Of a stretch of 64,000 bases of DNA, positions 1 to 57,395 are shown in pieces. Where the stretch lies: positions 9,260,129-9,324,128 of the forward strand of contig OZ037769.1 in the NCBI GenBank assembly GCA_964035545.1. The letters are read 5' to 3'. This stretch comes from Bugula neritina. Taxonomy: Eukaryota; Animalia; Bryozoa. Under the pieces are notes generated by a model. It searched no databases. It was not told the origin of the DNA and was given only the letters and a program-made list of their open reading frames with translations. The position numbers were made by a program, and so were the translations under genes. Every line of letters starts with the position of its first letter. Position 1 is the stretch's first letter.

Positions 1-2372
1 AGGACTTCGAGCCATCTGGCGACTTGGCTGGACGGTTCTGCTCTCTTGCATAACCAAATCAAGGAGGCGTGGTCGGTCCGCAAGCGGAACTTCCTGCCGT
101 ATAGATAGGGTCTGAAATGCTTCACCGACTTGATTACTGCCAGCAGTTCCTTTCGGGTAGTGCAGTAATTTCGTTCAGTGGGTGAGAGAGACTTACTGTA
201 GTAGGCCACGACCACTTCGCGGCCCTCCTGCACCTGGGACAGCACAGCGCCGACATTTTGGTCACTGGCGTCGGTATCTAGGATATACTCCAGGGCAGGG
301 TCTGGATAGGCTAAGATAGGGGCCTCTAGCAGGCGGCCCTTGAGGCAGTCGAACGCTCTTTGTTCGACGGGAGTCCACTGCCAGGTCACCCCCTTTGCGG
401 TGAGCCGATTTAACGGCTGCGCTACCCCCGCAAAGTCTGGTATGTATTGCCTGTAATACCCTACCAGCCCCAGGAAGGCCCGTAGTCCGGTCAAATCCTG
501 GGGGGTTACCCAATCTTCTATAGCTCGTACCTTTTCAGGATCCGTCGCCAAACCGTGACGGCCGACGACGTGCCCCAGGTACTTCACCTCTGGCTGCAAG
601 AGAGCGCACTTGGAGGGTTTGAGCTTCAGATTGGCACCTCGGAGTCGATTGAAGACCTCCCGCAGACGGCTGATGTGTGTTTGAAAGTCTGGGGAGATCA
701 CGATGACGTCGTCGAGGTATACCAGCAGTGTCTTCCAGTGGAGTCCACTGAGGCCCTGTTCCATGAGCCTCTGGAATGTGGCGGGGGCAGAAGTCAGTCC
801 AAAGGGGAGGACTTTCCACTTCCATAAGCCGTCCCGCGTGATGAATGCCGCCTTCTCCTGGGCGTCGGGGCTGAGGGGGACCTGCCAGTAGCCGCTCAAC
901 AAGTCTAACGTACTGAAGTACTTGCTGCCGGCCAAGGCGTCCAGAGATTCGTCGATCCTGGGTAAGGGGTAGGCGTCCTGTATGGTCACGCTATTGAGCT
1001 TGCGATAATCCACACAGAACCGCCAACTGCCGTCTTTCTTTCGGACCAGGACGACCGGCGAGCTCCACGCACTATGTGCTGGCTCGATGAGGCCGCGGTC
1101 CAAAAGATCCCGGACTTGTTGGCTGACCTCCTTTTCCTTCTCGGGTCCCAGCCTCCTAGTGGGCTGTCGAATAGGGGTAGTCCCTGCAGCTAGCGGTATC
1201 TCATGACGGACGGCCGTGGTCAGGCCGACGTCATGGTCCCCGCTGCTGAACACGTCGCTATAATCACGTAGCAACTGAGCCATGGCCTGGCGTTCCACGT
1301 TGCCCGTGCAGCCGTCGCACGCTGCCTGGTATAGCTCTTTGACGTGTGGTGGGACGGTCCCCCGCCTAACTGACGGGCTCTGTTGGGGACCTTCCGTCGC
1401 AGCTCCCAGCGACGGCCCTATATCTTCCTCCTGGATGGAGTGGAAGCGGCCCAGCATGGATCCTGACGGTAATTGTACCGCTTCGGAGAAGGGGTTGACA
1501 CACTGCACCAAGATCTCTCCTCGGTCAGTCAGCCGGTTGAGACTGCTGGCGAGTTGGATTCTTGTGTGCGCACCTTCGACAACCCCTAACCCCGAGAGTT
1601 GGCTATTGTTCACTCTGCAGTGAACGGTAGCCCGGGAGCGGCCGGGTATAGTACAGTTCCGTACTACCTGCACGCCTCCCGCTAGGGGACGACCGAACTT
1701 GTCGACACAGGCGAGCTCCCTGCCGCCCATTAGCATGGCTGACTTGCTAAAGTCAATACGGCACCCGTGTCTCTTCAAGAACGGCATCCCCAGTATAGCA
1801 TCCTCTTCAAGTTGGCTGATGACGAAGGTTTCCTGGATGGCCTGGTCGCGGATGCGCCCAGTCAGCTCTATGATACCGTAGAAAGGAATCCGTGACCCGT
1901 CAGCTAGGGTGCCCGGTTCCCCGGTATAGGGAGCTAAGGCTCCCCTCTCCCTAGGGGGGAGGGTGTCAAAGACCCGACGGCTGAGGAGATTAGTGGTACA
2001 CCCGGAGTCTAACAGAAAGGTGACAGCTCTGCCAGCCACCTTTCCTGGCAAGAAGTAGCTACCTCCGTGAGGTTGTACCCGTACTCCCCCAGCGTGCTCG
2101 GTCTCGGCCGAACGGGGCTGTGTCCGTTTGTTCCGCGGTTTGCGGGGCCGGTGAGAGTTTCCTTGCGGGGGGGTGTATTGATCCCCCCGATGCCCTGAGG
2201 GGCCTCGCTGGTCGGCTCCATTTCTGGTAGCGGACCGAAGCGGTTGGTGAGAGGTAGAGAGAAGGGGTCTCGTGGTCGACCCGGTTGGCTGGTTCGGCGG
2301 GGTGTTTGCCACTGATGGGGGCGTGCCGCTGGGCCCGTACGGGCTCCTGGCGGTACCCACCCCGTTTTCCTT
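1..2372 (-). CDS. Gypsy pol (protease, reverse transcriptase, RNase H), 3'-truncated by window edge
   Basis: One stop-free frame from the TGA at 2373-2375 to position 1. Motifs: FLLDSGCTTN (Asp codon 2007-2009), LPFGLTSAPATFQR, LVYLDDVI (Tyr codon 717-719), VKYLGH, LDTDASDQNVGAVL, ELLAVI, RTDH. Missing from the ORF track, probably because it has no stop inside the window. Confidence 0.93.
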
Positions 2373-3243
2373 TCAGTTTGGGTCCGCGGAGCTTTGGAGG
2401 TCTCCGGGGAGGTTGGGGTTTCTGCTGCCGTCTGAGTCGTGGGCAGCTTGAGCGGCGGTGTCCCTTGATGCCGCATTCCCAGCAGTGTACAGTGGGTCTG
2501 GGGGGTTTTACTGCTGGTCTCTTATACTTCCTTGGGTTGTTGTATGTTATGGTTGCCACCAACTGTCCCAGTTTAGTCATCAAGCGGTCAACCTCCATCT
2601 CTATAGGGAGGCTAGTGGTAGCGGCAGCTATTCGGACCGGGTGGTCTGGTTCTCTAGAGGTCTGCGGAGTAGTCTCCTCCGCCTTGTAGAGCTGCTCGGC
2701 CCCAACGTAGGCCTTGTCTTCTTGTATTGCGGCCTCGATCGTGGTTACTCCCTTTGCTTGTAACTGGTGGTGGAAGTTCAAAGAGTTGAGGGATTGTACA
2801 AAAGCTTCGAATGTATAGCGCCGTCTGTGTGTTTCTGGCAGATCGCTATACGCGATCCGTGCCAGTCTCTGCACCAGAGTAGCGTGATCAGGAAGCGGTG
2901 TACATGTTTTGCGGAGCAGTCCTTGCAACCGGGACTTGGCGACGGCAACGGGTATGCCAAAACGGGCCCGTAGTTTAGCAATGATCCCGTCTACGCTAGA
3001 TCCCCACCCGTACGGCTTGGCTTCTTCCGTCAGTGCCATTCGTAGTTTCATCAGGGTTACTCTTGGCGGCCATCTTGTAATGGCTGCAGCTTCACGGAAT
3101 TCTTGAATGAACTGTTCAACATCTTCAAGGCCCGTGAATACGGGAGCCTCTAATGTATTCCTATACGCCTCCTCTCCAACTTCGAGAGGGTCTATGATAA
3201 TGTTTCGCTCACCTTCTTCAGTTGAAGCTACACTTTCGGCCAT
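2059..3243 (-). CDS. Gypsy gag with CCHC zinc knuckle
   Basis: 394-aa ORF starting just after the PBS; contains CWECGIKGHRRSSC (CX2CX4HX4C). Confidence 0.9.
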   Translation of the reverse strand: MAESVASTEEGERNIIIDPLEVGEEAYRNTLEAPVFTGLEDVEQFIQEFREAAAITRWPPRVTLMKLRMALTEEAKPYGWGSSVDGIIAKLRARFGIPVAVAKSRLQGLLRKTCTPLPDHATLVQRLARIAYSDLPETHRRRYTFEAFVQSLNSLNFHHQLQAKGVTTIEAAIQEDKAYVGAEQLYKAEETTPQTSREPDHPVRIAAATTSLPIEMEVDRLMTKLGQLVATITYNNPRKYKRPAVKPPRPTVHCWECGIKGHRRSSCPRLRRQQKPQPPRRPPKLRGPKLKGKRGGYRQEPVRAQRHAPISGKHPAEPANRVDHETPSLYLSPTASVRYQKWSRPARPLRASGGSIHPPARKLSPAPQTAEQTDTAPFGRDRARWGSTGTTSRR

Positions 3244-3285
3244 GACGTTCTAATACTTTCCCATTGTCTTTATATAGTAGCTAGT

Positions 3286-3304
3286 AATCCCACCGCTGCC
3301 ACCA
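3286..3304 (-). promoter_or_regulatory. Primer-binding site complementary to tRNA-Leu 3' end
   Basis: - strand reads TGGTGGCAGCGGTGGGATT one base inside the LTR end. The + strand AATCCCACCGCTGCCACCA matches a metazoan tRNA-Leu 3' terminus including CCA. Confidence 0.88.
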
Positions 3305-3305
3305 C

Positions 3306-3577
3306 TGTAGTAATTTGTGCAATTACCGTGCGTGAGTTCCTAGCTTGTAATTATAGTCTATTTATCCACATCAATAAAGTATTTAAATAAGATTCAACGA
3401 GATTTATTTACTACTAAGTATAATAAGAGATACAAAAAGTACGCAGATTAAAAACACTACATCTTTACTCTTTTAGTACGCTCTCTCTACTGCTTTCTAC
3501 ATCGCTGGGGGTTATCACATGACGCACTCTTATTGGCTAAAGGGCTTGGGGGACACGCGTATTACGTACTCACTACA
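3306..3577 (-). repeat. 5' LTR (272 bp)
   Basis: TGTAGT...ACTACA terminal inverted repeats (TG...CA), abutting the PBS. The partner LTR and TSD are outside the window. Confidence 0.85.
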
Positions 3578-4881: not shown

Positions 4882-5433
4882 ATGGGATTGCTGTCAAACC
4901 TTATTACTCGAACTTTCTTTTACCCTTCAATAGCTCTGAATGCTGGTTCGAATTTGATTCTTGGTCAAAACTGGTATGACAGAATAAATGAACATATCGT
5001 TCTTGGAGCCTTACCAATGCCGTTCATGACAGGGGGACTAATCAAAGAAAAAGTCAAAGGTATAATTTCTCTAAATGAAGACTATGAGCTGAAACACATT
5101 TACAACAGCCAAGCCAAGTGGCAAGAATTCGACATCAAGACCCTTCGCTTGCCAACACCAGATTTATTTTATGCACCGACTATAGCTCAAGTAATGCAGG
5201 CTATCAGCTTCATTGATGAAGTAAAGTGTAAAGATAATGGCAGCGTCTACGTGCATTGCAAAGCAGGAAAGACTAGATCAACCACTGTTGTTATTTGTTA
5301 TTTAATGTACAAAGAAAATATGACACCAACAGATGCCTACAACTTTGTCAAATCAAAACGACCACAAATCTGGCTACGTAAAACACAGTTTGATTTTATT
5401 CAAAAATTTTATAACACGAAGCTAAAAATCTAA
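4882..5433 (+). CDS. PTPMT1: Mitochondrial phosphatidylglycerophosphatase / dual-specificity phosphatase, intronless, 183 aa
   Basis: WYDRINEHIVLGALP, NEDYE, LPTPD, and CX5R P-loop VYVHCKAGKTRS. N-terminal 'RTFFYPSI' and C-terminal 'KRPQIWL..Q' are typical of PTPMT1. Confidence 0.92.
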   Translation: MGLLSNLITRTFFYPSIALNAGSNLILGQNWYDRINEHIVLGALPMPFMTGGLIKEKVKGIISLNEDYELKHIYNSQAKWQEFDIKTLRLPTPDLFYAPTIAQVMQAISFIDEVKCKDNGSVYVHCKAGKTRSTTVVICYLMYKENMTPTDAYNFVKSKRPQIWLRKTQFDFIQKFYNTKLKI

Positions 5434-5591: not shown

Positions 5592-8500
5592 TTACCAAAT
5601 ATTACGGTATTTTAGTTGCAAAAATGATGTTTGTGCTTTTTGCTCCAATAGAGCCAATTCGCTTACAACTGGAGCCATTGAGTCCACATGGTCTCTGTAA
5701 GTCGAACCTGCAATGTAATAGAGTGTAGATTATGTTACATATGCCATCAGTTTCTCAACTGAATAGTAACTTTTTTGTCGCTAGCTCAAGCTAAATGTTG
5801 AAAATTATGTACTTCATGTACCGTATAAATAATTATGCTTTTAAAAAGAAACTTGAATATTTTTTAATCAGATTGGAAACAATTGTACTAAAAGAATTTC
5901 ACTTTGGTTCTATAGCATTTACATAAATGGCACTCTATAGTAATAAGTTTTTGTTACAAAAAATACCATTAGTAGTTAACTAAACCAAGCTGAGGTAAGA
6001 TAATAGCAGTGATTACCTGCAGCTTTTCTTTTTTGCCCATACGTTACTTTACCATCAAACTCATTGACTGGGATTGTCATTTCACAGTCCACCTGATCAA
6101 TTGTTATCCCAAGATGTTCTTCCACGTTAGCTAGTAGCGCAGGTTCATCATACCATATGCAGCACCCTCTTCTCTCCACCAAATCAGTGTTGTAACAATT
6201 TTTACCCCTGTTCTTGCAGTTACTGTGATACCACACCTGTCGATGAATACAGTCACATCATGGAGCAAAACATTTTTTATTAAGCATGGTTTTAGAGTTT
6301 TTTCTAATGGCTTAAAGATAAATTGTGACTAAATGGCATCTTTAATAAGACAGATACACTCATTTGCTTTGCACTAAATTTGTCGAAAATAGATCACACA
6401 TACCCTAATCTAAACATAACATATAGCAGTAGGTAATGTAAAAGCATACAGAATAAGTACAATTTACAGTAGGCTATAGCAGTTCACCTTCTCTGGTACT
6501 GTAGAGACTAATGATATAGCTAAACCCATTTTCTCTGCTCTGCCAACTCTACCAATACGGTGAACATAATTCTGCTTTTCATCCGGCAACGTAACATTTA
6601 TAACTACAAAAATGTAACTTTGATGTCAACATATCGGAGGTACGTTTTATGCTGTAACTTAGCAAAAACCATAATATGATTAGCAACTGATGCTTTATTT
6701 CTACAGTATTAAATCTGTGACAGTATTACATTTATTTTGCCGCTCTTTTGCTCCCAAAAACATAATAATAATCCAAGGCTATCATCACAATAAATATAAA
6801 CTGTCATAATGCACCTTCACATAAATGGCCCAGATTCACACCAAAGCTAATAAAACACATATAACCCTGTACTGCATATATGTACACTGCTGTTTGCTCA
6901 CCAAAGGGGAGACCAGACACGTCTAACCCACGGGCTGCCACATCTGTACATATCAAGAATCGAACTTCATTCTTCTAAAAACGAGGTGAAACAAGACCAC
7001 ATAAGCAATTGTTTTAACATAAGCAGCATGGCTAATAATTTCCTAGCACCAAAGTATGTATTTTGTCCCAAGTAAATGCTTAGTACACTTCATGCAGATT
7101 TGACAGAGGGAATTCTGACCTAGCAATAATCAGTCTTTTCAAGTTTAATTTGAGTGAATAAGCTTATATTGATTCATGAAACTTAGCTGTAAAAGTCAAT
7201 GCAATTAGTAAAGGAAGCAAAGTTTGTAAAATATTTATTATATAACTATCCAATCCAGTTAGAATAAAATTACAAACATAGCTGGATAAAAGTAATGAGT
7301 GTATTTGAGAAATTTCAAGTCGCAAGACTTGTATATTACTTGAAACTTGACCAAACTTGAAAGCAGCATGATTCAGCTTTCAGTTCACATTATAAGTTAT
7401 TATGCACAAAATATGTGAATGGGTGTTGTAGTCAAGTTATCGTGTTCACAGTAAAGGAGTTAGAGTTAGTGTTATGATACACAAGTTAAAGCAATGATAC
7501 ACAAGTTAGAGTGCTCATACACAAGTTTGAGTTTATTATGCAAAAGTTTGGTAACATTAACAGTATTTACTATATACGAGTATTATCTATGAGCACTTTA
7601 TATTTCATCAATCTAAACGCATATCTAGTATTTCAGAGTTGTGTTCTCTGAAAGAATTGATGCTCTAATCATACAACAGCCTACAATAGTGACCAGAATA
7701 TTTCTATTACATAAGTTCAGAGAAATGTCTAAAAACACTTAAACCAATAGCAATTGAAAGTTAACATGAAGAACAAGAATAGCCCAATAAACCTGATTGA
7801 CAGGGTTTGAACCATTGGCTTCAACAAAAATAAAGTGCCAGAAATTTCAGGCATGGTGTTGTTTAGCATGCAGCAAAAATCATGTGAGACTGCAAAGAAT
7901 TGAAATGGTCAGAAATCTTTTCTTTTTTAGTGGTTAGTATTCTTTTATGTTTAGAACTTCTATGCAACACATGCGCTTTATGAACTTAGCATATTGTTTC
8001 ACAAAATGTTTTTTACAAAGCTAGCAGTATTTGCACTCAGTAGAACCTGTATTTCCATATGTGTAATGATGCACAGAAATATTGGTACTTGTATTACCAT
8101 GCCAAGGATTTCAAAATATTCTGACAAACTGGGTGAGGACAAAAAGGTCTAGCTAAGCAAGTTATACTACAGATACTAAAAGCCCTAATAATTCTTTACC
8201 ATCATAAGACAGTTCAATGAAATGGCAAAAACAGATATATAAATTCTTTTTTACTCCCCTTATGATTGGCTGAATCTTTGTCACTGATCAATATTTACAA
8301 ATATTACAGATTGATATAGATATGAAAACTGACTCAGAAACTGACCTTGAACTTTTCTAGATTGCCTCTTCTCTCACCAGGGTTCCTGTCGCTATGCAAG
8401 CACACGCATGAGTATTTATGGTTTCTTGGAGCACCAGGACCTGTGGGATATTCTCATTAATTGACAACAGTAAAGAAATTTTTACTGTGCAGGAGAGGGG

Positions 8501-11500
8501 GGGGGGGCAGAGAAATAACGTGGGAATTGTAAAGAAGACAGTCTATCTTGTTCAGTACACAGCAGTAACACAGAGGTACCACAGAGGTAACACAGCAGTA
8601 ACACAGCAGTAACACAGCAGTACCACAGCGGTAACACAGCAGTAACACAGAGGTAACACAGAGGTAACACAGCAGTAACACAGCAGTAACACAGAGGTAA
8701 CACAGCAGTAACACAGCAGTAACACAGCAGTAACACAGCAGTAACACAGAGGTAACACAGCAGTAACACAGAGGTAACACAGCAGTAACACAGAGGTAAC
8801 ACAGCAGTAACACAGAGGTAACACAGCAGTAACACAGCAGTAACACAGAGGTAACACAGCAGTACCACAGCGGTAACACAGCAGTAACACAGAGGTAACA
8901 CAGAGGTAACACAGCAGTAACACAGCAGTAACACAGCAGTAACACAGAGGTAACACAGCAGTAACACAGAGGTAACACAGCAGTAACACAGAGGTAACAC
9001 AGCAGTAACACAGAGGTAACACAGCAGTAACACAGCAGTAACACAGCAGTAACACAGAGGTAACACAGAGGTAACACAGCAGTAACACAGAGGTAACACA
9101 GAGGTAACACAGCAGTAACACAGAGGTAACACAGCAGTAACACAGAGGTAACACAGCAGTAACACAGAGGTAACACAGCAGTAACACAGCAGTAACACAG
9201 CAGTAACACAGAGGTAACACAGCAGTAACACAGCAGTAACACAGCAGTAACACAGAGGTAACACAGCAGTAACACAGCAGTAACACAGCAGTAACACAGA
9301 GGTAACACAGCAGTAACACAGCAGTAACACAGCAGTAACACAGCAGTAACACAGCAGTAACACAGCAATAACACAGAGGTAACACAGCAGTAACACAGCA
9401 GTAACACAGAGGTAACACAGCAGTAACACAGAGGTAACACAGCAGTAACACAGAGGTAACACAGCAGTAACACAGCAGTAACACAGAGGTAACACAGCAG
9501 TAACACAGAGGTAACACAGCAGTAACACAGAGGTAACACAGCAGTAACACAGAGGTAACACAGCAGTAACACAGAGGTAACACAGCAGTAACACAGAGGT
9601 AACACAGCAGTAACACAGAGGTAACACAGCAGTAACACAGAGGTAACACAGCAGTAACACAGAGGTAACACAGCAGTAACACAGCAGTAACACAGCAGTA
9701 ACACAGAGGTAACACAGCAGTAACACAGCAGTAACACAGAGGTAACACAGCAGTAACACAGAGGTAACACAGCAGTAACACAAAGGTAACACAGCAGTAA
9801 CACAAAGGTAACACAGCAGTAACACAGCAGTAACACAAGGGTACCACAGCAGTAACACAGCAACGACATGTGATGTACACCACTTGTAATATTGCTTGAA
9901 ATTAACAAAATTGAAAGGGCAAGTTTTGAAATCTTCACATAATTCATATAATTTGTTTCATCATTGAAGTACATCAGGTTCTGTGGTAAAGAGAAGAGAA
10001 TATTAAAATAAAGAGAGTATGCACTACCTCCACCATGTTGGGTGAGATACTTTTCTGCATTGTCACAGTCCAGTTTAGTTCTACAAAAAATAATGGCTCT
10101 GTCCATCTTATGCTCATCAATAGCCTTCATCATCAACTCCCCTTTCAGCATCTTGACAGCTTGTGACAGGTTCTCTGTAAAGACACATGAGGCATGTAGA
10201 CCAGTGAATTTCATAGAGTCACACCAGGATTAACAGACGTTAATTCTTTCTGGTTGGCTAAAATTACAAGAGCGGGTAAAAATTAACTACTACAACATAA
10301 AAGCATTTAACAAGTTCTCAAGATACATCTACAGTCAATAGCATAGAGTAGATGAATACCCTTCATACAACTCAATGTGGTCATTAATAATTTACCAGTA
10401 TAATCATATTACTTCTATAAACTAAGTTTATATTAGCTGTAACCATTTTCATTAAACTAATAGAGTGTTTAGAACCAGAGTGTTGCAACTAATCAACATC
10501 ATTTATATATAAATAGCAACTCCTTATCTTAGCATTGGAACAATTTTAGCTTTAATGTCATTCTTAGTTAATACCAACATATATTTTTAAATTTCATAGT
10601 TTAGGCATGGAATACAACTTGTAAAAAAATCAAAACGTGTAAAAAGAATGTGGAAATTAAAATTCATTACATATACTTTTACATGTAAACAAATAGTCAT
10701 TACTTCATTATCAATACAAGCTGTGGCTGACTTTCAACTTTTGCTTTCTACAAAACACTGTACTGTGTAAAATCTGGTATTATTTAACAACTTGGAAAAG
10801 AAGCGACTGCCTCTACTATAGTCTCAGGAAATTATAATAAAATATTATAATTATTTATGAAAAATAGACTATGTTCTCAAATTGCAAAATTTGAATGAAG
10901 ACTATTTTGGTTTCACGTTTCATCAGCTTATAAATCAGCATTATTTGGAGAGTTGATTCTTTTATGGGGTTGTCTTTCCAATGATTTTAGACCAGTAAGA
11001 TGGCACCTATTCATTCAAGCACATATTTTACAACATGCACAACGTAGTATATAGATAGAAAAGCTATAAGGTCTATTAGTAAGGTAGACTTTTGTGTAGG
11101 GTAATCATCTCAATGTAGTCGATATGCAAATTTCTCAAAGAGTTGCATTGAATATAGAGTTACATCAATATAGTATTCCTGGTTGAAGTGTTACTTCAAG
11201 ACATTACAGCTACAAACTTGCAGTCAATACAGGATACCTATGCAACACTACATGAATATAAATCGCAGCATGAGATGTTCTGGCATAGACTATTAGAAAA
11301 AGTTAACAAGCCAAGTTAAGGTTCACCCCCCCCCTCCCTTGGAGAAACGACTGCATATAATACAAAGGTGAGTCGCCATCTAGAGGTAGGTGCAACATGT
11401 GAGCTCATCATCTGAGTTGATGCAGTTTTCATGGAACTTTTGCAACAAACTACAGATATTGAATAGTAAATTTCAGCCAATTGGTACACATTCAGGAAGG

Positions 11501-14500
11501 ATTCAGAATGAACAGCACCCCTTCAATAGACTTTTGGAGCAATGCGCTAGATAGCTACTGTGAAGACAACATGGACCAAAATATATGCATGGAATACATG
11601 TTCAAAGATGTGTTCACTTTTTATGACGTGGGGTATGCTATAGACATATCTGGAGACCCCAGCTCAGCAATGCTTGGTTAGTATTTGTTTTAGCACTACT
11701 TTAAGGTAGTTATATTACTATATGGTGTATTGTTTATAACATTTCTGGTAGCATGGTATGTTAACAGATCCAAGTTCTGCCGATTTATTAGAACCTGAGA
11801 AAGTCTTGCTCAACTTTAGTACCAACACTTATTTGAACGAAATGTTTATTCCTATAATTTATTTCCTCCACTAGGTTACCATGTAACAGCTGTCATCATG
11901 GCAATTGGTTTGGTTGGCAATATTCTGGGACTAGTATTGCATTTCACCAGATGTACGACCCAGTTCCATGTGTACTTGACATTCCTTTCTATAATCAATA
12001 TGGTAAGTTTATTAAACACATGTAATTAGCAAGTTCATTAGGTTTGTAATTGCCTACATCCAATATATTATATGTTTAAAGCATATGGAGCATACAGTAT
12101 TGCTAACATATGTGTGCTTTACCAGCTAGCTTTTCCTTATACATTTCCTTTGCAAGCTACCATGAAAGTTATTGACCCAATATCCATTTTCACTAAATTA
12201 AAATCAATATCTCATAGCAACAATATTTAATGTCATGCTATTTACGGGATTGAACTTTTCTCAAGTTTCATGATGAACGGTTACCTGGATATACTGAAGG
12301 TATATACTGGGATATACTGGGCAATACCATGTATTCAATGTTGCAGGTATACTTATGCACTGCAAGTCTAGCACAAGCTCTGCACATATCTGGGGCCATA
12401 GACCCTGTAGTCCTACAGTCTAATGTGGCGTGTAAACTCTGGCCTCCCCTTATAGAAACAGTGAATGATATCACCGGGTGGACTGTAGTTGTTATGGCTT
12501 TTCAGTTACCTATCAGAAGTAAATACCATAGCCCTGCCTCCAACAAGAACACCAGTCTCAGGCTATTCTATGTAAGCTTGCTATTTCCTCGGGCATATCT
12601 CACTGTCCCCTATACTTACAGTTCAGTTTAAACTCCTTAGGCTACCATTAAATTTGAAGATAATGTTATTTCATCTATTATAACTTTAGCATGGTATATC
12701 ATTTGCCTGTTCAATCAGTAACAATTTAGTGAAGTTATTGGCATTATTTTTAAACTTACAGGCTAAGCTACAGTGCACTAGCATTACAATTCTGGTTTTG
12801 TTCTTGCACTACAGTAGCACACTACTGCGGGATCAAAACGACGACAAGTGTACTGTATCCCCAAGAGCAGGAAAGTTCTATAGGAATGTTTGGCCATGGA
12901 TACAAGCCACTTGTGGCACTTACATGTATGTTAGTATGTAGTTTATCTACACTGAATTATGATGGTGCGTACTAGTGTGTGGCAGTCTATTTATGCAAAA
13001 ATATTAGAGTAATATATAGCGTAATTAGAGGTAAAAACTAGCAAATTCTACACACTAGTAATTTACTACATCAAAAAAGACAATTAAATTTTAGTTCAAT
13101 TTAAACTTGATATGAAAATTTACAGGAATTTGTTCAAAATGAATGTAGGAAAATTAACCTACAATTAATATTTACTTTTAAATCACTTCTGTCCAATGAA
13201 ATGGTAATGGAAGTTAAGGAACCAATCACTAATATAGAACGTTTGACATCACGAAGATGAAATTACCCTTCTTCAATAATTATATTAAATATACTTAAAA
13301 TATTTTACCATCTATCAAACTCAAAATACAGCTCAGGAAAGAATTTTAACTTCTTACTAATTAGTTTCATGTCAGAACCAGAGTTGCACACAATGATGAG
13401 ATGATAGTGAAAGGCTTCGTTAAACTATCACTAAAAGCGAAATTGATGGGTTTCTGGTGTAACTACTTCCACCATTATATAAGATGATAGTAGGTCTAGT
13501 GAATAACAAGTATAATCAAATAAAATTTAAGCACTTCTTATCAAGTTTTCAACAGTTTTCTAAATATCTTCACAAAACTGCAAAAATTCACTCAATATTA
13601 AAAAACTTCACACTTTCAAGTAATTGATAGTTCGAAAAACTTGAAATTTTAAAATTTTTCAAATTTGAATAAGATTATACCTGGAGACCCCTTAAATTAT
13701 ATATATAATGATTATTTTATATTATAATACTTGGTATAGTGTTGTTCCATTGCTACCAATATTACTTGTTTATTCCTATTATACTTTAGACCGTGTATTG
13801 CTTCCATTGTGATCATAATCAAAAGAGTTTTTGAAGCACTAAAGATGCAAGCCGAAGAGCGGTGTAGTTCGTTTTGTGGGGTTACTATATGCATCTGGTA
13901 CACCATACTGACAACTGCATGCAGGTAAAACAAGTGCTGTGTCTATATGCTATTTGTATAAATTATAACTCCCTTAGGGAGTACAGAGTTTGATGTCATG
14001 GTAACAGGGCGACACTCATTGTAACTAACAAGCTAAGCTCATTACCTATGCACACAGAAACATTGCTACTAGTCTCAGGGCAGCAAGCTGATGATCTTGC
14101 AATAACAAGTTTCATGTTCTAACTACGCTGACTGCCATTTTGTGAACAGTAACCAAATAACATTTCTTGATTTAATGCCAATTGAAAGTGAGAAAAAGTA
14201 TGTGCTGTTTACATAGAGTTATTTAAAAGCTTATGCCACTATTATTATCAATATAAAACTATGTATATCATATGTTGCATTTATAGCTTCTTCACTACAC
14301 CAACTATACTATACTAATTATACTGTATGTATGTAATCACAGTGTAGAAATCAATGCTTCTATCATCCCTGACACTCCCTTAAACAGTCAAGTCTTGACA
14401 TACTAGATATAAAAACTGTGTTTTCTGGCTTTCCTTCATCAGAAACAGGATATTCTAACAGTTTCAAACAATTGTAGGATGGTAGTGCTACCTTATGAGT

Positions 14501-17500
14501 ATTATTTGCTCACATCAAGTAGTGAAGACAACTCCAACAAAGTGACATTGGTACACTTGGAGCTAGCACGAAACCTTTGTGAAACAACCATGCATTCTTT
14601 AGCCGTACTACCAGCATTGGTGTTGATGCTATGTAGATAAATATATCCATCAACTGTACACATATACAAGAGGATTCACAAACACGTTATGCTAATCTGA
14701 CACATGTAATAGCTTCACCTACCTATGATAATGTTACGCCATATAAAAGTATAAAAGACCCGAGAAAGGCAAGCCTTTATCAAATAATTATTCAATGCAA
14801 TAATTGACATATATTTTTATTGATTTCTCCCAAATACAAAATCCCATCTTACTCCCCTGTTTGTTGTATTTATTGCCTTTGGCCATGGAAATTAAGTTTC
14901 AATCTAAGGACACATATACCTTTAGAGGGTTGATTAAAATTCATCCTGTCCTTGGCATGCACTCCATCAGTGTCCCAGTGTCTGCTTAATTGCTTCCAGT
15001 TGGTTACAGCCACTGGATCCACAAGACACACGACATGGTGCACAGTGTCGGGCACAGAGTCCTGGCCTTTCAAATCAATCCACACTGGAAAGTTCATCAG
15101 TCTGTCCTGAATATAAAATAAATATGTAACGTGAAAACTAGATGGACTTCTTTAACCTCTGGTGCCAATATTATAATATAAGTGAATGCACTAGTAAAGC
15201 ATATAAAACCTCAAGCTGTATATATGATATACTGTATGATGTAGAATTATATATACTATATATACTATATTTCTTGGCATGCTGTAGAATCATAGATATC
15301 TACAAGATGATGTATGTTTTTTATAGTATATACACACAGAATCATATCATACATGATTGCTTTATATAAATTGTAGTATATTATACTCTATTGTACATTA
15401 TATTGAAAACATTATATATAATATATAATTATACTATATTGAGTTATATTGCATTGGATGATACTGTATTGGATTATATATTCTACCGTACTATACGGTG
15501 AACACACATATATTTTAACTCACAGCCATTCGACGGACATCAGGAGAATGTAGTGTGGCAGAGCAGACAACCATTTGCAACTTTTTACCATCCGCCGTCA
15601 CTTTGGGTATTTTAGCATGCATTCTGTTAATAAGATCTGTGTTACCCTGAGAGAGCAATCCATCCTGCAAGGAAATTGCACACACTTCTCAAACATTTTG
15701 AGAAAGCAGATAATAACCAGTGAATGCAGCCATGAACATGTTCAACAGTGAGAACTCTGTGGTAATTCGTAATTAACACTTTACTTGTCCATCTTGCATT
15801 TTCAACTCATTCAGATTTTGTCATTATTCAAATAAGAAAAAACATACATCCTGTATTACTCCTAAATTGTATTCATTACACAACTAACTCAACGAGGTAT
15901 GATATGAGCCACTTACAGCTTCGTCTAGAACAAAGAATCGAACTTGAGACAAACTTAGATTCCCCGTAGATACAAGGTCTTCTATTCTTCCCGGAGTGCC
16001 GCATACAATATCAACCTATAGAAATCAGCCATGTGTCATAACCTGCTGGAACTATGCATTTTCTGGTCAATAAATTTCACAGAATTTATCAAATATACAA
16101 AGCACTTGAATTTAAATATAATAAGTTAAAAAAATATGCAGTTGATCACTGGGCCAAAAACCACTCATTGCACTACCAAACAAAGTTTCAAACTGTGAGT
16201 ACAAAGCATTAGTGATCCCATTATAAACAAAGACAACTCAAAGTTTAATCACCATCTGATCATCTTTCCAATTCCAAGATGGTAGACATTATAAACTCAC
16301 TCCACTTTTCAATGCTGCTATTTGTTCTTTTACCGCAATACCACCGACACACAGGAGTTCTGAGATACCAGGAGCAGCCAACTTCTTCTTGAAAATGTTT
16401 ATCTGTTTATGGGTTTGTTCAGCTAGCTCCCTGGATGGCTACAAAGTCATTTGAAGATACATATTCAGGTTGGTTTACATTAGAAGTATACTAAATAGGG
16501 TGTACAAATATATAGATATAAACAGGTGTATATTGTATATATAAAACCGATAGAAACATACGAAAGTAAAGCCAAACTTTCCACAAGTTTCATATTCAAT
16601 ATAGATTGCAAACTAATATCAAAATATTGTAAGCGTTGACTAATGAAAATACTGAGTCATCGTGTTTATCTGCTACCCTATGTGCAGGAAGTCCCAAGCT
16701 TCAGGTTCTTGAATATTCTGAAACATGGCTGGGTATGGCAATGTCTCTGACGGGTTAATAAGAGATCAATGAACAATATACAGGTGGTCTTCAATAATAC
16801 ATGTCTTTAATGACACAACTGAGATAAGCAGATAAGTGCATTTTTTTCCACACAAGCACCAGCTAAACTGGAGGTAATCATAAAAATAGAGCAATAGACA
16901 TACTTCAAGAATGATGGCATATGGTGCGTTATTAGCTTTTGTTTTAGATGCCACGGCACCAGAACCTACAAAAAATAAAGCTATATATTTCTAAAGTTAC
17001 ACACAATTTCCTGTTGCCCTTTACACTACATCACGTGTGCTCAGCGTTTCAGATTTTGAGAATATTTATAATAGATGAAATGTCCAAATTATCAAAAGTG
17101 TCACTGTTGGCATCGCAATAATGTGTACTAACCTGAGAAAACTTTCATCAAGCTCTGCTTAACATATCTAACCAAACATTTTTTCAACAATTGAAATTTA
17201 TTGCCCCTTACATGCATGCTAGTACAATAAATGATTTTTGGATAGATTCTAGAGTCAATTATTTTGAACATTTCATAAATTCAGTATACTAAGGTATAGT
17301 AAAAATGGAGGGTATGAAGTTCTCACTTCACGTTCTGCCAGTTGAGCAAAGTACTAGGCCAGAGAAGCGCACAGGTTGCATTTCATCTTTATTTTTCTTA
17401 CATAACAGACCAAACTTTCTTATATAACCAACCTTTCTTATATGACCAACCAAACAACCTTGAAACCTTGTGGTTCTGTTCCTAGTAAGATACTAACTAC

Positions 17501-20500
17501 TAATTTTCATCTACTTGCTTGCTATAAATAACTATAAATAGCTATAATAGCTAACAGTAGCTAGCTATACAGCTGAGTCAAGCTAGCTTTAAATTTGAGT
17601 TAGTAATCAAAACCAGTGGTGGAACGGGCACAAATCCCAGCCCAGGTGAAGTGCAAGAAAAAACTTGACAGAGGGTAAATGGTATTACTTTCAGTTCATA
17701 GCTTTCAGACATGTTTATTCAGCTGATAGGCTGATTATCAGCCACCAGAATGCAGAGTTACTCACCAACAACTGTTGATGCTCTGCAACACTTCTCACTG
17801 GCTCTGTTCAGCGCTATATGTCCCTCAACAGGCTCATACTTGAAAGGGGAGTCCCCAAAGTTAAACTTCATCTCGGCATTCTACAATAGTGATGAAGTTA
17901 CCTGCCCACAAAACTGGTACACACTTTAGATAGAATAACTCAGGAAACAGGCTGATATGTAGAATAAACTAAGTCAGGCAGGTGCACCGAGAAGTGGTAC
18001 TGAAAACCTTCTAAATTAAATAACAGAGAAAGTTTTGAGGGTATGGCTTGAGAAGTCATTTTACTGCAGAGGTGCAGTTGTTAAACAGTAAGCAATAAAA
18101 CATGGAGTACATGTTGAATACACTTTGAGTAAATATTAATTCACAATGACATATTATCTCAGTCTTGTTCTTTTAGCTTTGCCGCAGCTCTTCATTTATA
18201 GTATTACAAATTTAGTATTAACAGAAACACAAAGCGTAGCATATATTTTTGGTAATTATAGTGCAGCTTGAAACACAGGGTATACATAGTCTGAGAAAAC
18301 AAGCAATTACCAGCGATTAAGAACAAAGTTACTGCTAGAAATTAAAATTAAAATAATCTATTTTCAAAACATAACAAAACTACTTGACAATATTTGATAA
18401 CCATTTTCCATGGATTAAGAATCTGAGAACACAGGTATATGAAAAGGCTAACTGACTGACTTGCACCCTTTCATTCCTCACATTGATTGCATTAAGTAGT
18501 TTTGATTAGGTTTTATATTACAAATGATTTTAGTGCATCTACCATCTATTACAATGATAATGCATCAATTAACTGTAAACTATTACCTTCAACACAACTG
18601 CAGCATAAAATTCACTTCTTTTCAGGTCTTTGGGGATATCGAAGGCTAGCCCCAAATCTTCCCCGTTTTTGGTATAAGCTATTTCACTAGAATCTAAGTC
18701 TATGTAACAACCAAGTACATCGTGTTGTCCGAACGCCTAAACAACAAAAATATACAAGAAGTTATAACACAGTTTTCATATCAAACCATTTATAAGAAGT
18801 AATAATCGTGTAACATGCATCAATACAATACAATATAGTGCCAAGACTCAATACACTCAACATGCTTCTTGTATAAGTTTGAGTTTTGAAGTACAACTAA
18901 AACACAAACAGAGTACGTGTTTACCAAAAGTTAATAGCCTAACAATTTGCTTTCGAGTCAATGAACAACAGCTACCAAGTTAATGTAAATCAAATACCGT
19001 TCCATAGTCATCAAATTGTTTATTGTTGGACTTTTTCCCAGTTCCACCAAAACCAAAGCCAAATTTGTCAGTGCCAAGGTTTCGGTTTGCTTTTTCAGTG
19101 GCCCAACCAACACGACACAATCCTTCGTCTGTTACAGTAGCTTCATAGTAGTATTTACCTACAGGAGTATTAATCGGGCTGTAAGACACATTTATTGTAT
19201 AAACAGAGCCACATCTAGTACCACGGTGTACAGGTGGACTAGCTATGAGCTCTATAAACAAATGGCTCTGGGTGTCGGTTGTCCGTAGCTACAAAGACAA
19301 GTCCCATTTATGCATTACCTGTCACACCACTCAGTCTCACACACTTGTATTCTGTTTTACTAACCTGAGCCAAAAACAGCCATTGAAGATCTCGTACCAT
19401 GCCAGCCAGCCTGATCACGGCTTTGGCAAAGCAACCCACTGCTATCAATAGCTACAATGTAGGAAATGAATGCTAGACAAAAATTAGGACAGCCAAGGAT
19501 TCTTGAAACTTGCGAAAAACATTCTAATGAATAATTCTTACAGTTACTTTAGAGATAAAATATTTTAGAATTTTATAAAAATATTGAATATGGAATTGAC
19601 TTTTTGGAGATGCAAAAAATATTTCTTGAAAATGGTCAAGTTGTAAAAAATAAACTGAGTTTAGAAGAAAATATCATAGATAATGGGCTATAAAATCAGT
19701 CAATAAAAAAATCAAAGAAGGGTCTATAGTTCGGGCTTTAGAAACTAGTTTGAAGGTGAATTTATACTTTTTCTAAAGAAGTGCTAAATTTAAGTTAATT
19801 CAACTCTGCTGCCACCCTTTTATGAATGACTTTGCTTTTATAATACAAAAAATACCGAAATCGTCTCTATGTCACATTAGTTTCAACGGAAAAACAGTCA
19901 GAGAATTATAATGGAATAATGTAAGTGTGGCAACTACCAACCAACATACAACGGCATTCTAATATCCCAACATATCAACTTACAAAAATGCTATGTACCA
20001 GAGAGAGAAAACAAGAGACTAAAACAAGTGAGAGACAAGAATAAGAAGACTCTAGGAAGAGAGCCACTGCTCAGGCCCACATGATAACTTGAGTAAATTT
20101 GTTGGCCTCAGCAGCCACAGAAATGAGTAGACAGACTGTGAAACCAGTTACAAGATGATTTCAACTTCCTAACTACGAGTGACTACTAGTTACACAACCA
20201 AGTGCTGTCTCATGTCCTTCATGACCTTTGTATATTAAGTTAACTATTCACAAGGCTATGACTTCTCACTGCGTCTTAATATTATAGACTACTGTTGAAT
20301 CGCAGTGTGTGCTTATGCATGTGTGCATGTGTGTGCTAGGGCTAGACCTACTGTACATACCCATTTTAGAATCTCTATCAAATGCATTCATTCGCCATTC
20401 TTTAGCAGTCACATTTCCTGTAAAATACATGACACACACTAAAACCCCACGCCATTACAACATTGTAACAGTAAAAAGTAATTATTATAATGCGTAGTTG

Positions 20501-51600: not shown

Positions 51601-54600
51601 ACAAATCAATTTAATTTATGTAACATTTACCATGTATAATAATATGTAACGCTGTACAATATAACTTAGATTATATTGCATACAATATATATGGTATAAT
51701 GGTTTATAACCTTTTACTAAATAATGTTGTTTTGTGTCACTAAAAGTGATTAACTATACCAATACATGCTGACAACAGTGTGTGGCTAGGAAACAGTACA
51801 TGCTGACAACAGTGTGTGGCTAGGAAACAGTACATGCTGACAACAGTGTGTGGCTAGGAAGCAGTACACTCCTTACCAGGTGAAATAATGGGAGGAGTCT
51901 CTACTACTTTCTCCTGTGGAGTTTCCTTATCAGGTTGTGAAGATGCAGCCACATGGTTGTTACCTAGACATACAGAAAACAATCACAGTATGAATGGATC
52001 ATACAAATCTGAAGGCTGGCCCTGCTCTTTAGCTGAGCATCTGTATATGTAGCTTCCCAATCCTCATGTTTCACAGTAGTTGATGCATTGGGTGAAAATA
52101 CCATCTCTAAGAATGTGCACACAGGAGGTACTATGTCATTTAACAGTGTCAACAAATTATGCTACCAAGGATAAACAACATAGATTACAGCTGATAGAAT
52201 CCCAATTCTCCTGCAATACTTGTTTTCATAGCATGAGTCAAAATCTAAGTTAGGCGCAGCAAACGCTAACTTGGAATTGAAGATAACTCCCTGTATAATA
52301 TTAATCTTTGAGTTAACTTGGCTTCAATAATCACTGCACCTGCTAGCTGGCCATATTATGAATATAGCCAGTAACCATACGAGTTACTTATTCCACAAAG
52401 GTGTATCACTCAATCTTACACACCTATGTAAAACTATCAGTCAACTGGGCATCAGAATCAGAAGCAAATTGTTCTGGAACCAAAGTTAAAGTAGCTGACA
52501 GAAAAGGTAAGATAATGGTGCATTCAACAAGCAATATTCCTACCAAGGGGAGTGAAAAGGTGAAGGTGGAAGAATACTGACCATCATAGTGCTGAGGTGT
52601 GGAGTGGTCTAGACTTGCTGGTGCATACACTGTAGCATCAGATGCAGCTGAAACAATCACATTGCAGAGTGAGAGCCAAGAAACTAAGAAAAAAGAGCTA
52701 CTAATACAGTAGCAGGCTCCGTGCCTAGTGTTGGTGTAAAATAAATATACCAGCCAAAGCTGAGCTGGAAAATTATTACTCTGATTAAATACATGAAGTC
52801 AGAGAAATTTTGTGCTTGGATAGGTCATTCACATTAGGGAGTTTGCTGAACTAAAGTATATTTAGTATATTTAGTACGTGAGGGAAATGGCGTTACCAGA
52901 AGTAGCGGAGGCCGTGGTCATTATTGTCTCATCATTACAAGTAGAGTTGTTGTCTGTTTGAAGTAATCCAATGACCAGTTCCATGGGGGACTCCATCTCA
53001 GCTGGAGATTCACTGTAACCTGCTGCCACTTTATTCGAACTGCAACCCCCTGTGAAAGTCAAACTGTGGTAATAGTCAGCATTGATATACTAGAGAGACA
53101 GTATGGCATACTAGAGAGACAGTATGGTATACTAGAGAGATAGTATGGTATACTAGAGAGACAGTATGGCATACTAGAGAGACAGTATGATATACTAGAG
53201 AGTCAGCATTGATATACTAGAGAGACAGTATGACATACTAGAGAGATAGTATGATATACTAGAGAGACAGTATGATATACTAGAGAGATAGTATGATATA
53301 CTAGAGAGACAGTATGATATACTAGAGAGGCAGTATGATATACTAGAGAGATAGTATGATATACTAGAGAGATAGTATGATATACTAGAGAGACAGTATG
53401 ATATACTAGAGAGACAGTATTGATATACTAGAGAGACAGTATGGTATACTAGAGAGATAGTATGATATACTAGAGAGATAGTATGATATACTAGAGAGAT
53501 AGTATGGTATACTAGAGAGATAGTATGATATACTAGAGAGATAGTATGGTACACTAGAGAGACAGTATGGTATACTAGAGAGATAGTATGATATACTAGA
53601 GAGATAGTATGATATACTAGAGAGACAGTATGATATACTAGAGAGACAGTATGACATACTAGAGAGGCAGTATGATATACTAGAGAGACAGTATGATATA
53701 CTAGAGAGACAGTATGGTATACTAGAGAGGCAGTATGATATACTAGAGAGACAGTATGATATACTAGAGAGACAGTATGATATACTAGAGAGATAGTATG
53801 GTATACTAGAGAGATAGTATGATATACTAGAGAGATAGTATGATATACTAGAGAGACAGTATGGTATACTAGAGAGACAGTATGGTATACTAGAGAGACA
53901 GTATGACATACTAGAGAGACAGTATGATATACTAGAGAGACAGTATGATATACTAGAGAGATAGTATGATATACTAGAGAGATAGTATGATATACTAGAG
54001 AGATAGTGTACAGAATATAATATATAAACTAGAGAGAATATAATATATAAGCTGAGAGAATATAATATATAAACTAGAGAGAATATAATATATAAACTAG
54101 AGAGAATATAATATATAAACTAGAGAGAATATAATATATAAACTAGAGAGAATATAATATATAAACTGGAGAGAATATAATATATAAGCTGAGAGAATAT
54201 AATATATAAACTAGAGAGAATATAATATATAAACTAGAGAGAATATAATATATAAACTAGAGAGAATATAATATATTAACTAGAGAGAATATAATATATA
54301 AACTAGAGAGAATATAATATATTAACTAGAGAGAATATAATATATAAACTGGAGAGAATATAATATATAAACTAGAGAGAATATAATATATAAACTGGAG
54401 AGAATATAATATATTAACTAGAGAGAATATAATATATAAGCTGAGAGAATATAATATATTAACTAGAGAGAATATAATATATAAACTGGAGAGAATATAA
54501 TATATTAACTAGAGAGAATATAATATATAAGCTGAGAGAATATAATATATAAACTAGAGAGAATATAATATATAAACTAGAGAGAATATAATATATAAGC

Positions 54601-57395
54601 TGAGAGAATATAATATATAAACTAGAGAGAATATAATATATAAACTAGAGAGAATATAATATATAAACTAGAGAGAATATAATATATAAACTAGAGAGAA
54701 TATAATATATAAACTAGAGAGAATATAATATATTAACTAGAGAGAATATAATATATAAACTGGAGAGAATATAATATATTAACTAGAGAGAATATAATAT
54801 ATAAGCTGAGAGAATATAATATATAAACTAGAGAGAATATAATATATAAACTAGAGAGAATATAATATATAAACTAGAGAGAATATAATATATAAACTAG
54901 AGAGAATATAATATATAAGCTGAGAGAATATAATATATAAACTAGAGAGAATATAATATATAAACTAGAGAGAATATAATATATAAACTAGAGAGAATAT
55001 AATATATAAACTAGAGAGAATATAATATATAAACTAGAGAGAATATAATATATAAACTAGAGAGAATATAATATATAAACTAGAGAGAATATAATATATA
55101 AACTAGAGAGAATATAATATATAAGCTGAGAGAATATAATATATAAACTAGAGAGAATATAATATATAAACTAGAGAGAATATAATATATAAACTAGAGA
55201 GAATATAATATATAAACTAGAGAGAATATAATATATAAACTGGAGAGAATATAATATATTAACTAGAGAGAATATAATATATAAGCTGAGAGAATATAAT
55301 ATATAAACTAGAGAGAATATAATATATAAGCTGAGAGAATATAATATATAAACTAGAGAGAATATAATATATAAACTAGAGAGAATATAATATATAAACT
55401 AGAAAGAATATAATATATTAACTAGAGAGAATATAATATATAAACTAGAGAGAATATAATATATAAGCTGAGAGAATATAATATATAAACTAGAGAGAAT
55501 ATAATATATAAACTAGAGAGAATATAATATATAAACTAGAGAGAATATAATATATAAACTAGAGAGAATATAATATATAAACTGGAGAGAATATAATATA
55601 TTAACTAGAGAGAATATAATATATAAGCTGAGAGAATATAATATATAAACTAGAGAGAATATAATATATAAACTAGAGAGAATATAATATATAAACTAGA
55701 GAGAATATAATATATAAACTAGAGAGAATATAATATATAAACTAGAAAGAATATAATATATTAACTAGAGAGAATATAATATATAAACTAGAGAGAATAT
55801 AATATATAAGCTGAGAGAATATAATATATAAACTAGAGAGAATATAATATATAAACTAGAGAGAATATAATATATAAACTAGAGAGAATATAATATATAA
55901 ACTAGAGAGAATATAATATATAAGCTGAGAGAATATAATATATAAACTAGAGAGAATATAATATATAAACTAGAGAGAATATAATATATAAACTAGAGAG
56001 AATATAATATATAAACTGAGAGGATATAATATATAAGCTGAGAGAATATATTGTATAAACTAGAGAGAATATATTGTATAAACTAGAAGAACATATGGTA
56101 TAGGTTGAGGACTCTTACACACCTTTGGCCACAGCAGGCAGTTTAATTGCATCGAGATTCACATCTAGTTGAGAATCAGAGCTTGCACTGACAGAGTGGC
56201 TTCTCTTTGGATAACTGAACCTACTAAACATATCATCTGCTAGTCAATGATAACTTATAGATTACAATTGTAACTCTATAGCAAACTCTACATATCATCA
56301 ATTAATTGCTTTCTATGAAGATAAAATACCAATATTTATATAACATACCAGGTTCTAAGAAACCAGGTATTTTTATATTCACAATTATTTACTTGTTATA
56401 TTTGCACTGCACCTAAAGGTCCACAGATGGAAATGTGGTTACCACATCACCAACCACTAACAGGGAAAAGCTAGCACTCCGTATATTTTTTGCATCATTA
56501 GAAAATTTACCTTATAACAAATTTACTTAAACATATCCAATTAAGTTTCTATCAATCAAAAAATACTAACGTTTTCGAATTCATGCCCGCTCTCAATTGA
56601 AGTCTGACCAATCATTTAGTAAATAATTACAAACCTTCCAAGTCGTTTACCAGCTGATGGTGGCTTAGAGAGCTGTTGCACAGAGAAGGTCGAGTCTTTA
56701 GCAGAATTTGCACTAGTATCCTTCAAGAAGCTGAAATCAGGAAGGCAACGGGTTTGTTGAGTTTTATCAGGACTGAGTGTCTGTAGACTGTCTTCTTCCA
56801 CAACACATGGGAAGCTACTACTCCACATCTGAGAGGCTTCTGGACTTTTTGCTGGGCTTGTTGACAGATCTTTAACTACAAATACTTCCCCATTGTACTT
56901 TCTTATGCATAAGGAATAATGTACAACGCTAAACACAAGAATGATTATGCTAGTCACCACTATTATCTGCAGACTGTTTAGCTGATGGAGAAGTTCGCTT
57001 ATTAGTAGAATCTTTTATGTCAAGTCTATTGGCTGATTCTTCAGATAGGGACAGCCAATCAGTGTTAGCACCAGAAAACAACTCTTCATCATTCTCAAGT
57101 TGTTTAGCCAATTCTAAAATGTTGAGCAACTAAAATAATATATTTGTTAGACTTTGAGGCAAACGAATGCAAGCATTTAAAAAATAATAAGACATAACAT
57201 AGGAGGCGTTGTCACCTCATTTCATATCTTACCATCACTATCATCTACAGTGTGAGGCAGCTCTTTGCTACAAGGAAAGTCAAAGTTCAGGGAGTACTGA
57301 CTAATCCTTTCAGAAAAAAGATCTTGACTAATTTTTGTTGAGCTCTGAAGTGAACATCGATTTTCTTCTTTGTCTGAGTCTGACCAATAATCCAT
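39664..57395 (-). CDS. Large disordered protein with C-terminal BRCA1/BARD1-type tandem BRCT domains (~1,636 aa, ~19 exons); no RING found
   Basis: Phase-consistent exons: 57233-57395, 56958-57113, 56635-56875, 56123-56220, 52897-53049, 52582-52647, 51877-51963, 49553-51372, 49018-49158, 48606-48762, 47059-47787, 46671-46823, 45657-45805, 44346-44474, 43175-43289, 41651-41752, 41393-41514, 41023-41130, 39664-39885 (sum 4911 nt). BRCT motifs FTCTSL, VTHVL...CPRTLKYMLAVLEAKWVVNIEWASFC, PRLFAGCEFYLVGDF, LIEAGGAK, WLLDSIAHY. The BRCT exons are secure; the small central exons are less certain. Confidence 0.8.
42202..42722. repeat. Variable 14-18-bp minisatellite (TATATAACAGAGAG core) in BRCT-gene intron
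   Basis: Visible tandem array with variable GA/TA run lengths. Confidence 0.93.
45833..46035. repeat. (AGT)n microsatellite, intronic
   Basis: Visible trinucleotide run; source of the poly-T/L/V ORFs in the track. Confidence 0.93.
51763..51868. repeat. 34-bp tandem repeat x3 next to a splice donor
   Basis: TACATGCTGACAACAGTGTGTGGCTAGGAAACAG at 51763, 51797 and 51831. Confidence 0.92.
53083..54007. repeat. 21-bp minisatellite (~44 copies, GATATACTAGAGAGAYAGTAT)
   Basis: Visible tandem array; source of the YCLSSIS/YHTISLV ORFs. Confidence 0.96.
54013..56090. repeat. 23/22-bp minisatellite (~90 copies, GAATATAATATATAAACTAGAGA)
   Basis: Visible, highly homogeneous array with recurring 22-bp (GCTGAGAG) and point variants. 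Confidence 0.97.

Follow-up and report, generated by a model that had tools for sequence, protein, structure and literature searches.

A conserved bryozoan gene nested antisense in a DDX1 intron, with a predicted product derived from class A receptors

Does an intron of the helicase gene DDX1 in the bryozoan Bugula neritina hold a second gene, and what kind of protein might that gene encode? A sequence-only reading of a 64,000-nucleotide (nt) stretch of this genome (assembly GCA_964035545.1, contig OZ037769.1, positions 9,260,129 to 9,324,128; hereafter the window, to whose numbering all unlabelled coordinates refer) had proposed a spliced plus-strand frame of 327 amino acids (aa) wholly inside one DDX1 intron, coding for a seven-helix receptor from which the canonical class A (rhodopsin-type) activation motifs had been erased. 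We rebuilt this frame and compared it with related loci and with the receptors of the same genome. We consider it probable, with room for doubt, that the locus is a genuine DDX1-nested gene derived from class A receptors, whose product would retain the binding of a ligand or partner while its output would not pass through the canonical G-protein/arrestin interface.

Six plus-strand exons between 11508 and 14640, rebuilt from the window, join into 984 nt (327 codons followed by TAA). All five introns run from GT to AG; the acceptors have a pyrimidine-rich tract just upstream, and the donors read gttagt, gtaagt, gtaagc, gtatgt and gtaaaa. The frame and its exon borders were reproduced exactly as proposed, as were the borders of the host intron, where the GT donor and AG acceptor can be read on the minus strand. 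Every motif quoted earlier is present in the rebuilt protein: NST at residues 2–4, GN in the first transmembrane helix (TM1), LSIIN, the cysteines of TM3 and of the second extracellular loop (ECL2), MAFQL, VWPW, IPC in TM5 and a terminal LMLCR before the stop. The features are listed below, together with the flanks of the orthologous locus (L004, OY755159.1) in the cheilostome Watersipora subatra; ICL denotes an intracellular loop.

10175..14919, minus strand: DDX1 host intron, holding the whole nested gene; donor GT at 14919-14918, acceptor AG at 10176-10175.
14920..15106, minus strand: exon of DDX1 on the upstream side of the host intron, whose Watersipora counterpart (L004 20371-20583) borders the ortholog there.
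10028..10174, minus strand: exon of DDX1 on the downstream side of the host intron, where the helicase C-terminal domain begins (3' end approximate); its counterpart (L004 8908-9084) likewise borders the Watersipora ortholog.
11508..11676, plus strand: exon 1, with the start codon and an N-terminal ectodomain that carries the glycosylation sequon at N2 and two cysteines conserved in Watersipora; phase 1 at its end.
11875..12002, plus strand: exon 2, with TM1 (GN, N1.50), ICL1 and the inner half of TM2 (LSIIN, with N in place of D2.50).
12347..12571, plus strand: exon 3, with outer TM2 and ECL1 (invariant YLCTASL), TM3 with Cys3.25 and LWPP, AFQ replacing DRY, and ICL2.
12762..12925, plus strand: exon 4, with TM4, ECL2 and its conserved Cys, the FYRNVWPWI stretch and the start of TM5; ends in phase 2.
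13790..13924, plus strand: exon 5, 135 nt, frame-neutral if skipped, with the remainder of TM5 (IPC), ICL3 and the inner half of TM6.
14478..14640, plus strand: exon 6, with outer TM6 (LPYEY), ECL3 and TM7 (LAR-LC-T-MHSLA; LPALV replacing NPxxY), and TAA 8 residues past P7.50; the nearer DDX1 exon lies 279 nt beyond.

An open frame of this length is not in itself a sign of a gene. Dynamic programming that chained at most six GT-AG exons into the longest possible stop-free frame reached 243–414 codons in 30 shuffles of the intron and 334–973 codons in other pieces of the window; because free GT-AG chaining attains similar lengths in shuffled sequence, we rejected the open frame as evidence. The ease with which such frames arise by chance supports an alternative in which the locus is accidental or decaying, either a pseudogene or an incidental open reading frame (ORF) in a non-coding transcript running antisense through the DDX1 intron. 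The same alternative gains from the lack of any transcript-derived protein on record, and from the RefSeq model of the Watersipora ortholog, which omits exon 5 and shortens exon 3. What sets the gene apart from chance is instead the contrast in base composition between exons and introns, together with conservation. The GC content is 40–45% in every exon, compared with 27–34% in every intron and in both flanks. A search with exon 3 returned near-identical, unspliced genomic ORFs (P0001, P0007); their contigs, from a sibling taxon (L006, L007, L011 and L012), are ~92% identical over the whole intron. Within this alignment the 984 coding nt contain no indels and no stops and 10 of 10 splice dinucleotides are kept, whereas all 20–22 gap events lie in the surrounding non-coding sequence (P about 0.006–0.009). 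Mismatches amount to 4.0% in exons and 6.7% in non-coding positions (Fisher p 0.0012); exon 1 has 3.6%, again with no indels. The differences are distributed 10:3:26 over codon positions 1:2:3, dN/dS is 0.15 by NG86 and 0.23 by maximum likelihood, and 13 non-synonymous differences are found where neutrality would predict ~30 (P 4e-9). The sequence-only reading had named disrupted orthologs with dN/dS near 1 as the mark of a decaying pseudogene; the orthologs are intact and the ratio is far lower, so the pseudogene explanation is not borne out. Intact orthologous frames with identical exon phases in Watersipora and in a third taxon also speak against accident or decay, which is already strongly disfavoured and to which we assign hardly any probability.

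How far back can the gene and its position be followed? Exon 3 alone retrieved the Watersipora protein XP_067929405.1, annotated as "uncharacterized protein", whose locus is again antisense to DDX1 and enclosed by the same pair of its exons. Its RefSeq model (L004 10001-19827) encodes 260 aa; it leaves exon 2 by a GC donor, splices from a weak donor within exon 3 and omits exon 5. A tblastn search of the Watersipora locus found no counterpart of exon 5; a phase-aware scan gave a candidate (L004:17548-17673) whose acceptor and donor are both good and whose junction arginine is also the same. Using this candidate, and the exon 3 donor that matches the Bugula gene, in departure from RefSeq, the reconstructed Watersipora gene is stop-free, encodes 319 aa in the same six exons with matching phases, and shows 36% identity over the full length. 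The RefSeq model is therefore probably wrong in structure or represents a minor isoform, as judged from this reconstruction; we infer from its GC donor and exon skipping that it looks transcript-derived. A tandem duplication of ~73 nt (L004 17459-17604) copies the acceptor and the first part of the candidate exon. In the third taxon (L005), exons 3 and 4 are kept with the same borders. A word search with the Watersipora protein matched only itself and found no wider family. Among further matches to exon 3, P0005 and P0006 are repeat proteins aligned on a short hydrophobic stretch, dismissed after reading, and P0003 (1,543 aa, five short stretches), a repeat protein with short hydrophobic matches, was dismissed by its match table alone. 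The nested gene thus appears to be restricted to bryozoans and is conserved, on these comparisons, in at least two of their lineages. It is absent from the protein collections searched for the Bugula genome and represents a gain in annotation.

The identity of the host is supported by its SPRY exon (18980-19261), which matches Pfam SPRY, and by the Watersipora host gene, whose domains run DEAD, SPRY, DEAD and Helicase_C. The entire coding region lies on the opposite strand within a single host intron, in a position common to the Watersipora ortholog, and the antisense nesting goes back to an ancestor shared by the Bugula-like and Watersipora lineages. Comparable arrangements are known in other animals: 2mit lies on the opposite strand in an intron of Drosophila tim2 (PMC3786989), and Israa in an intron of mouse Zmiz1 (PMC8361231). 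As in those pairs, a complete coding gene occupies one opposite-strand intron and the arrangement is kept between species; unlike them, the host is DDX1 and the guest a receptor-type gene. Our literature search found no paper on this gene or on any DDX1-nested receptor. The next DDX1 intron carries a 22-nt minisatellite of ~60 copies with 92% matches (8553-9862), which produces a spurious minus-strand ORF of 585 aa (8457-10214) that runs into a real DDX1 exon.

What protein does the gene encode? One comparison was profile-based: with hhalign, an alignment of the family from four taxa was compared with class A ORFs of the same genome. Against 31 class A receptors the probability was 93.2% (P 2.9e-7), with TM1–TM5 in class A register; two disjoint receptor subsets gave 82.8% (P 9e-6, with the nearest paralog left out) and 76.3%. 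Reversed-sequence controls (n = 6) gave 0.2–0.8%. The register places GN on N1.50, Asn on D2.50, the TM3 cysteine on C3.25, AFQ on DRY and the ECL2 cysteine on its disulfide partner; the proline of IPC falls on P5.50 or at most one residue from it, depending on the run. An exon 4 profile run over the 216-Mb genome found itself and only one 7tm_1/Srw gene (E 0.003), the nearest paralog:

G000:C4:17590719-17591492 (L035:340-1269), minus strand: 7tm_1/Srw receptor; Pfam 7tm_1 68 bits, Srw 58 bits.

This paralog aligns with the nested gene at 94% probability in hhalign and shares a stretch of 12 identical residues in 20 at the ECL2/TM5 border. VWPW-type TM5 starts had been linked earlier to peptide-receptor-like genes, a link that this single paralog bears out within the genome. 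The nested protein resembles 7tm_1/Srw receptors such as L035 in its seven helices, N1.50 in a GN context, the TM3–ECL2 cysteine pair and the prolines of TM5, TM6 and TM7; it shares with L035 the FY-NVWPWI stretch and a profile-profile probability of 93–94%. It differs from them in having D2.50, DRY, W4.50 and NPxxY replaced and in lacking helix 8 and a C-terminal tail, and its gene is split into six exons, while most class A genes in the genome consist of a single open frame. Paralog searches of the same genome with exons 2, 3 and 4 gave only self matches, and profiles of exons 3 and 4 added only the one distant 7tm_1/Srw gene; by these searches the nested gene appears to be single-copy, without a close paralog. 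L035 itself reads LDK at DRY and NFFLY at NPxxY, which hints at a local class A lineage with relaxed motifs. Elsewhere in the genome, clusters of weak (35–65 bits), single-exon 7tm_1 genes of ~315–380 aa on contigs C9 (2.3–2.4 Mb; 4.7–4.9 Mb) and C6 (11–13 Mb) of G000 are likely lineage-specific receptor expansions.

Protein-model searches point the same way. In the ESM Atlas, the feature neighbours of the Watersipora protein are all 7tm_1 clusters (0.92–0.93), and the structure neighbours of its model (predicted local distance difference test, pLDDT, 0.58) are 7tm_1 clusters with TM 0.6–0.72. This agreement is supporting evidence only, because one third of shuffled proteins also receive ten neighbours from a single family. 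That same behaviour of shuffled proteins, with no Pfam match at E ≤ 10 and no PDB sequence match, would suit a seven-helix protein of another or no known family, whose likeness to class A is merely shared hydrophobic periodicity. Reversed profiles keep both composition and hydrophobic periodicity, yet score 15–20 where the true comparison scores 47–55; the register also sets N1.50 and both disulfide cysteines correctly and the TM5 proline at or within a residue of P5.50, and a 7tm_1/Srw paralog has the shared ECL2/TM5 stretch. We regard an origin outside class A as very improbable. The relationship to G-protein-coupled receptors (GPCRs) that had been put up for checking is upheld by hhalign, the nearest paralog and the Atlas neighbours, and the product is best described as a putative, very divergent class A protein of Srw/peptide-receptor-like type. 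Taken together, the comparisons of sequence show that the nested gene is genuine, evolves under purifying selection, keeps its position between lineages and has its relatives among class A receptors.

Which parts of a class A receptor has it kept? Seven hydrophobic segments are common to the Bugula and Watersipora models, at the upper end of the six to seven helices that the sequence-only reading had expected at the least. The N-x-S/T sequon at residue 2 is conserved in Watersipora, which suggests that the N-terminus lies outside. N1.50 and the Cys3.25–ECL2 pair occupy class A consensus positions, and the cysteines are invariant in four taxa. The claimed loss of the activation motifs is likewise seen in the profile alignment, with N at D2.50, AFQ at DRY and LPALV at NPxxY. 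Asn stands at the D2.50 position in both the Bugula and the Watersipora protein, and at the DRY position the window has AFQ, the sibling ASQ, Watersipora TTH and the third taxon AFY. R3.50 and Y7.53 are missing in all taxa seen, W4.50 and N7.49 are also lost, and only the prolines of CWxP and NPxxY are left (LPYEY and LPALV/IPILI, in a region of low-confidence alignment). The chain runs 8 residues past P7.50 before it stops in the window and the sibling, and 15 past it in Watersipora; helix 8 is absent, since the Bugula chain ends so soon after this proline.

The pattern of conservation offers a clue to function. Identity to Watersipora is highest in the outer halves of TM2 (83%), TM7 (71%), TM6 (64%) and TM5 (54%) and in ECL2 (44%), compared with 0% in ICL3, 15% in inner TM5 and 18% in ICL2. 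Selection would thus act mainly on the outward ends of TM2, TM3, TM5, TM6 and TM7 and on ECL2, with ICL2 and ICL3 drifting. With outer ends conserved over drifting intracellular loops, the most likely function is to bind a ligand or partner on the extracellular (or luminal) side, and this contrast, the variable DRY position and the early stop together favour a binding pocket without the canonical transducer interface. We propose that a class A ancestor may have given rise to a protein that kept N1.50, the TM3–ECL2 cysteines, the TM6 and TM7 prolines and the N-terminal sequon, and that may have lost D2.50, DRY including R3.50, W4.50, N7.49, Y7.53, helix 8 and the C-terminal tail. Its orthosteric pocket would bind the extracellular (or luminal) ligand or partner, its output would bypass the canonical G-protein/arrestin interface, and it may be a decoy or scavenger, or the ligand-binding subunit of a receptor whose signal is carried by another membrane protein. 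Among class A receptors, the atypical (decoy) ones, for example ACKR1/DARC and the other atypical chemokine receptors (ACKRs), have lost or altered DRY and bind ligand without classical G-protein signalling; they keep a C-terminal tail for arrestin-driven internalisation. By analogy, the nested protein would share with them a class A fold with DRY lost or altered, and its conserved pocket and unconstrained intracellular loops would fit the logic of a decoy. It differs from ACKRs in having no C-terminal tail, and the likeness is not based on sequence relationship.

The main rival is a working GPCR, for example a lineage-specific chemoreceptor or peptide receptor, that couples through non-canonical residues. 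Coupling of this kind has been suggested for many serpentine receptors of nematodes and for other divergent members of class A, and descent from an Srw/peptide-receptor-like group would fit. L035, with neither a standard DRY nor a standard NPxxY, still scores as 7tm_1. Tail-less receptors with N2.50 that couple also exist: the mammalian type I gonadotropin-releasing hormone (GnRH) receptor has Asn2.50 and no cytoplasmic C-terminal tail, retains a motif of DRS/DRY type as well as DPxxY, and signals through Gq. The nested protein is like it in the Asn at 2.50 and the missing tail, and unlike it in keeping neither a DRS/DRY-type nor a DPxxY motif. Coupling is opposed by the loss of R3.50 and Y7.53 in every taxon seen, by the variation at the DRY position, by ICL2 and ICL3 being the least conserved parts, and by a chain that stops before any helix 8. 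On this balance we think G-protein coupling unlikely, though not negligibly so, and prefer a binding protein whose output avoids the canonical interface.

Several results weigh against the preferred reading. The spliced product of the nested gene was not found in a collection of 5.8 billion proteins, and the case for transcription therefore rests on selection and on the Watersipora RefSeq model. Pfam 7tm_1 and Srw, the scan proposed by the sequence-only reading, matched no exon and not the Watersipora protein even at E 10, and none of the 143 7tm_1 matches across the genome falls on the nested locus; phmmer against PDB sequences gave only noise. The class A alignment of TM6–TM7, which sets LPY against the proline of CWxP and LPALV against NPxxY, is of low confidence. 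From the single Watersipora sequence AlphaFold2 gave no confident three-dimensional model (pLDDT 39.7); that model was not used for a fold search, since matches to it would be meaningless. The outer and inner parts as a whole are 42% and 27% identical to Watersipora at a modest p value (0.015) and with approximate topology boundaries. Finally, the loss of DRY and NPxxY is no proof of lost G-protein coupling.

A bolder version of the binding-protein reading is conceivable, which we put forward only tentatively and do not expect to hold in full. A bryozoan-specific, rhodopsin-derived protein would have been kept through the whole cheilostome radiation as a pure ligand-binding module without a G-protein/arrestin interface (a scavenger or the sensing subunit of a heteromer). 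Obligatory antisense transcription across the host intron would link its expression with that of DDX1, and the frame-neutral exon 5 might switch between seven- and six-helix forms.

The remainder of the window holds further features. A single-exon dual-specificity phosphatase of 183 aa (4882-5433, plus strand; Pfam DSPc, 2.7e-22) is convergent with the DDX1 3' end. Positions 1-3500 are a retroelement piece with a GC content of 58% in a genome of 34%, and contain a gag-like minus-strand ORF (2059-3243) with a CCHC zinc knuckle. Two adjacent minisatellites lie at 53083-54007 (21 nt x 44) and 54012-56095 (23 nt x 91); in the second, GC content falls to 19%, with strong GC and AT skew.

What does the locus mean for bryozoans and for receptors of this class? 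The Watersipora ortholog is filed without a domain and with an exon structure that is probably wrong, and the conserved nesting in DDX1 provides a simple synteny handle for locating the gene in other bryozoans. The gene illustrates how widely a class A receptor may diverge even under clear purifying selection. With the activation micro-switches and the C-terminal signalling platform gone and the pocket-facing surface kept, it is well suited to testing what roles the rhodopsin fold may have apart from G proteins. Chemical cues guide the choice of settlement site by bryozoan larvae, and an orphan surface receptor, if that is what the gene encodes, would be of interest there.

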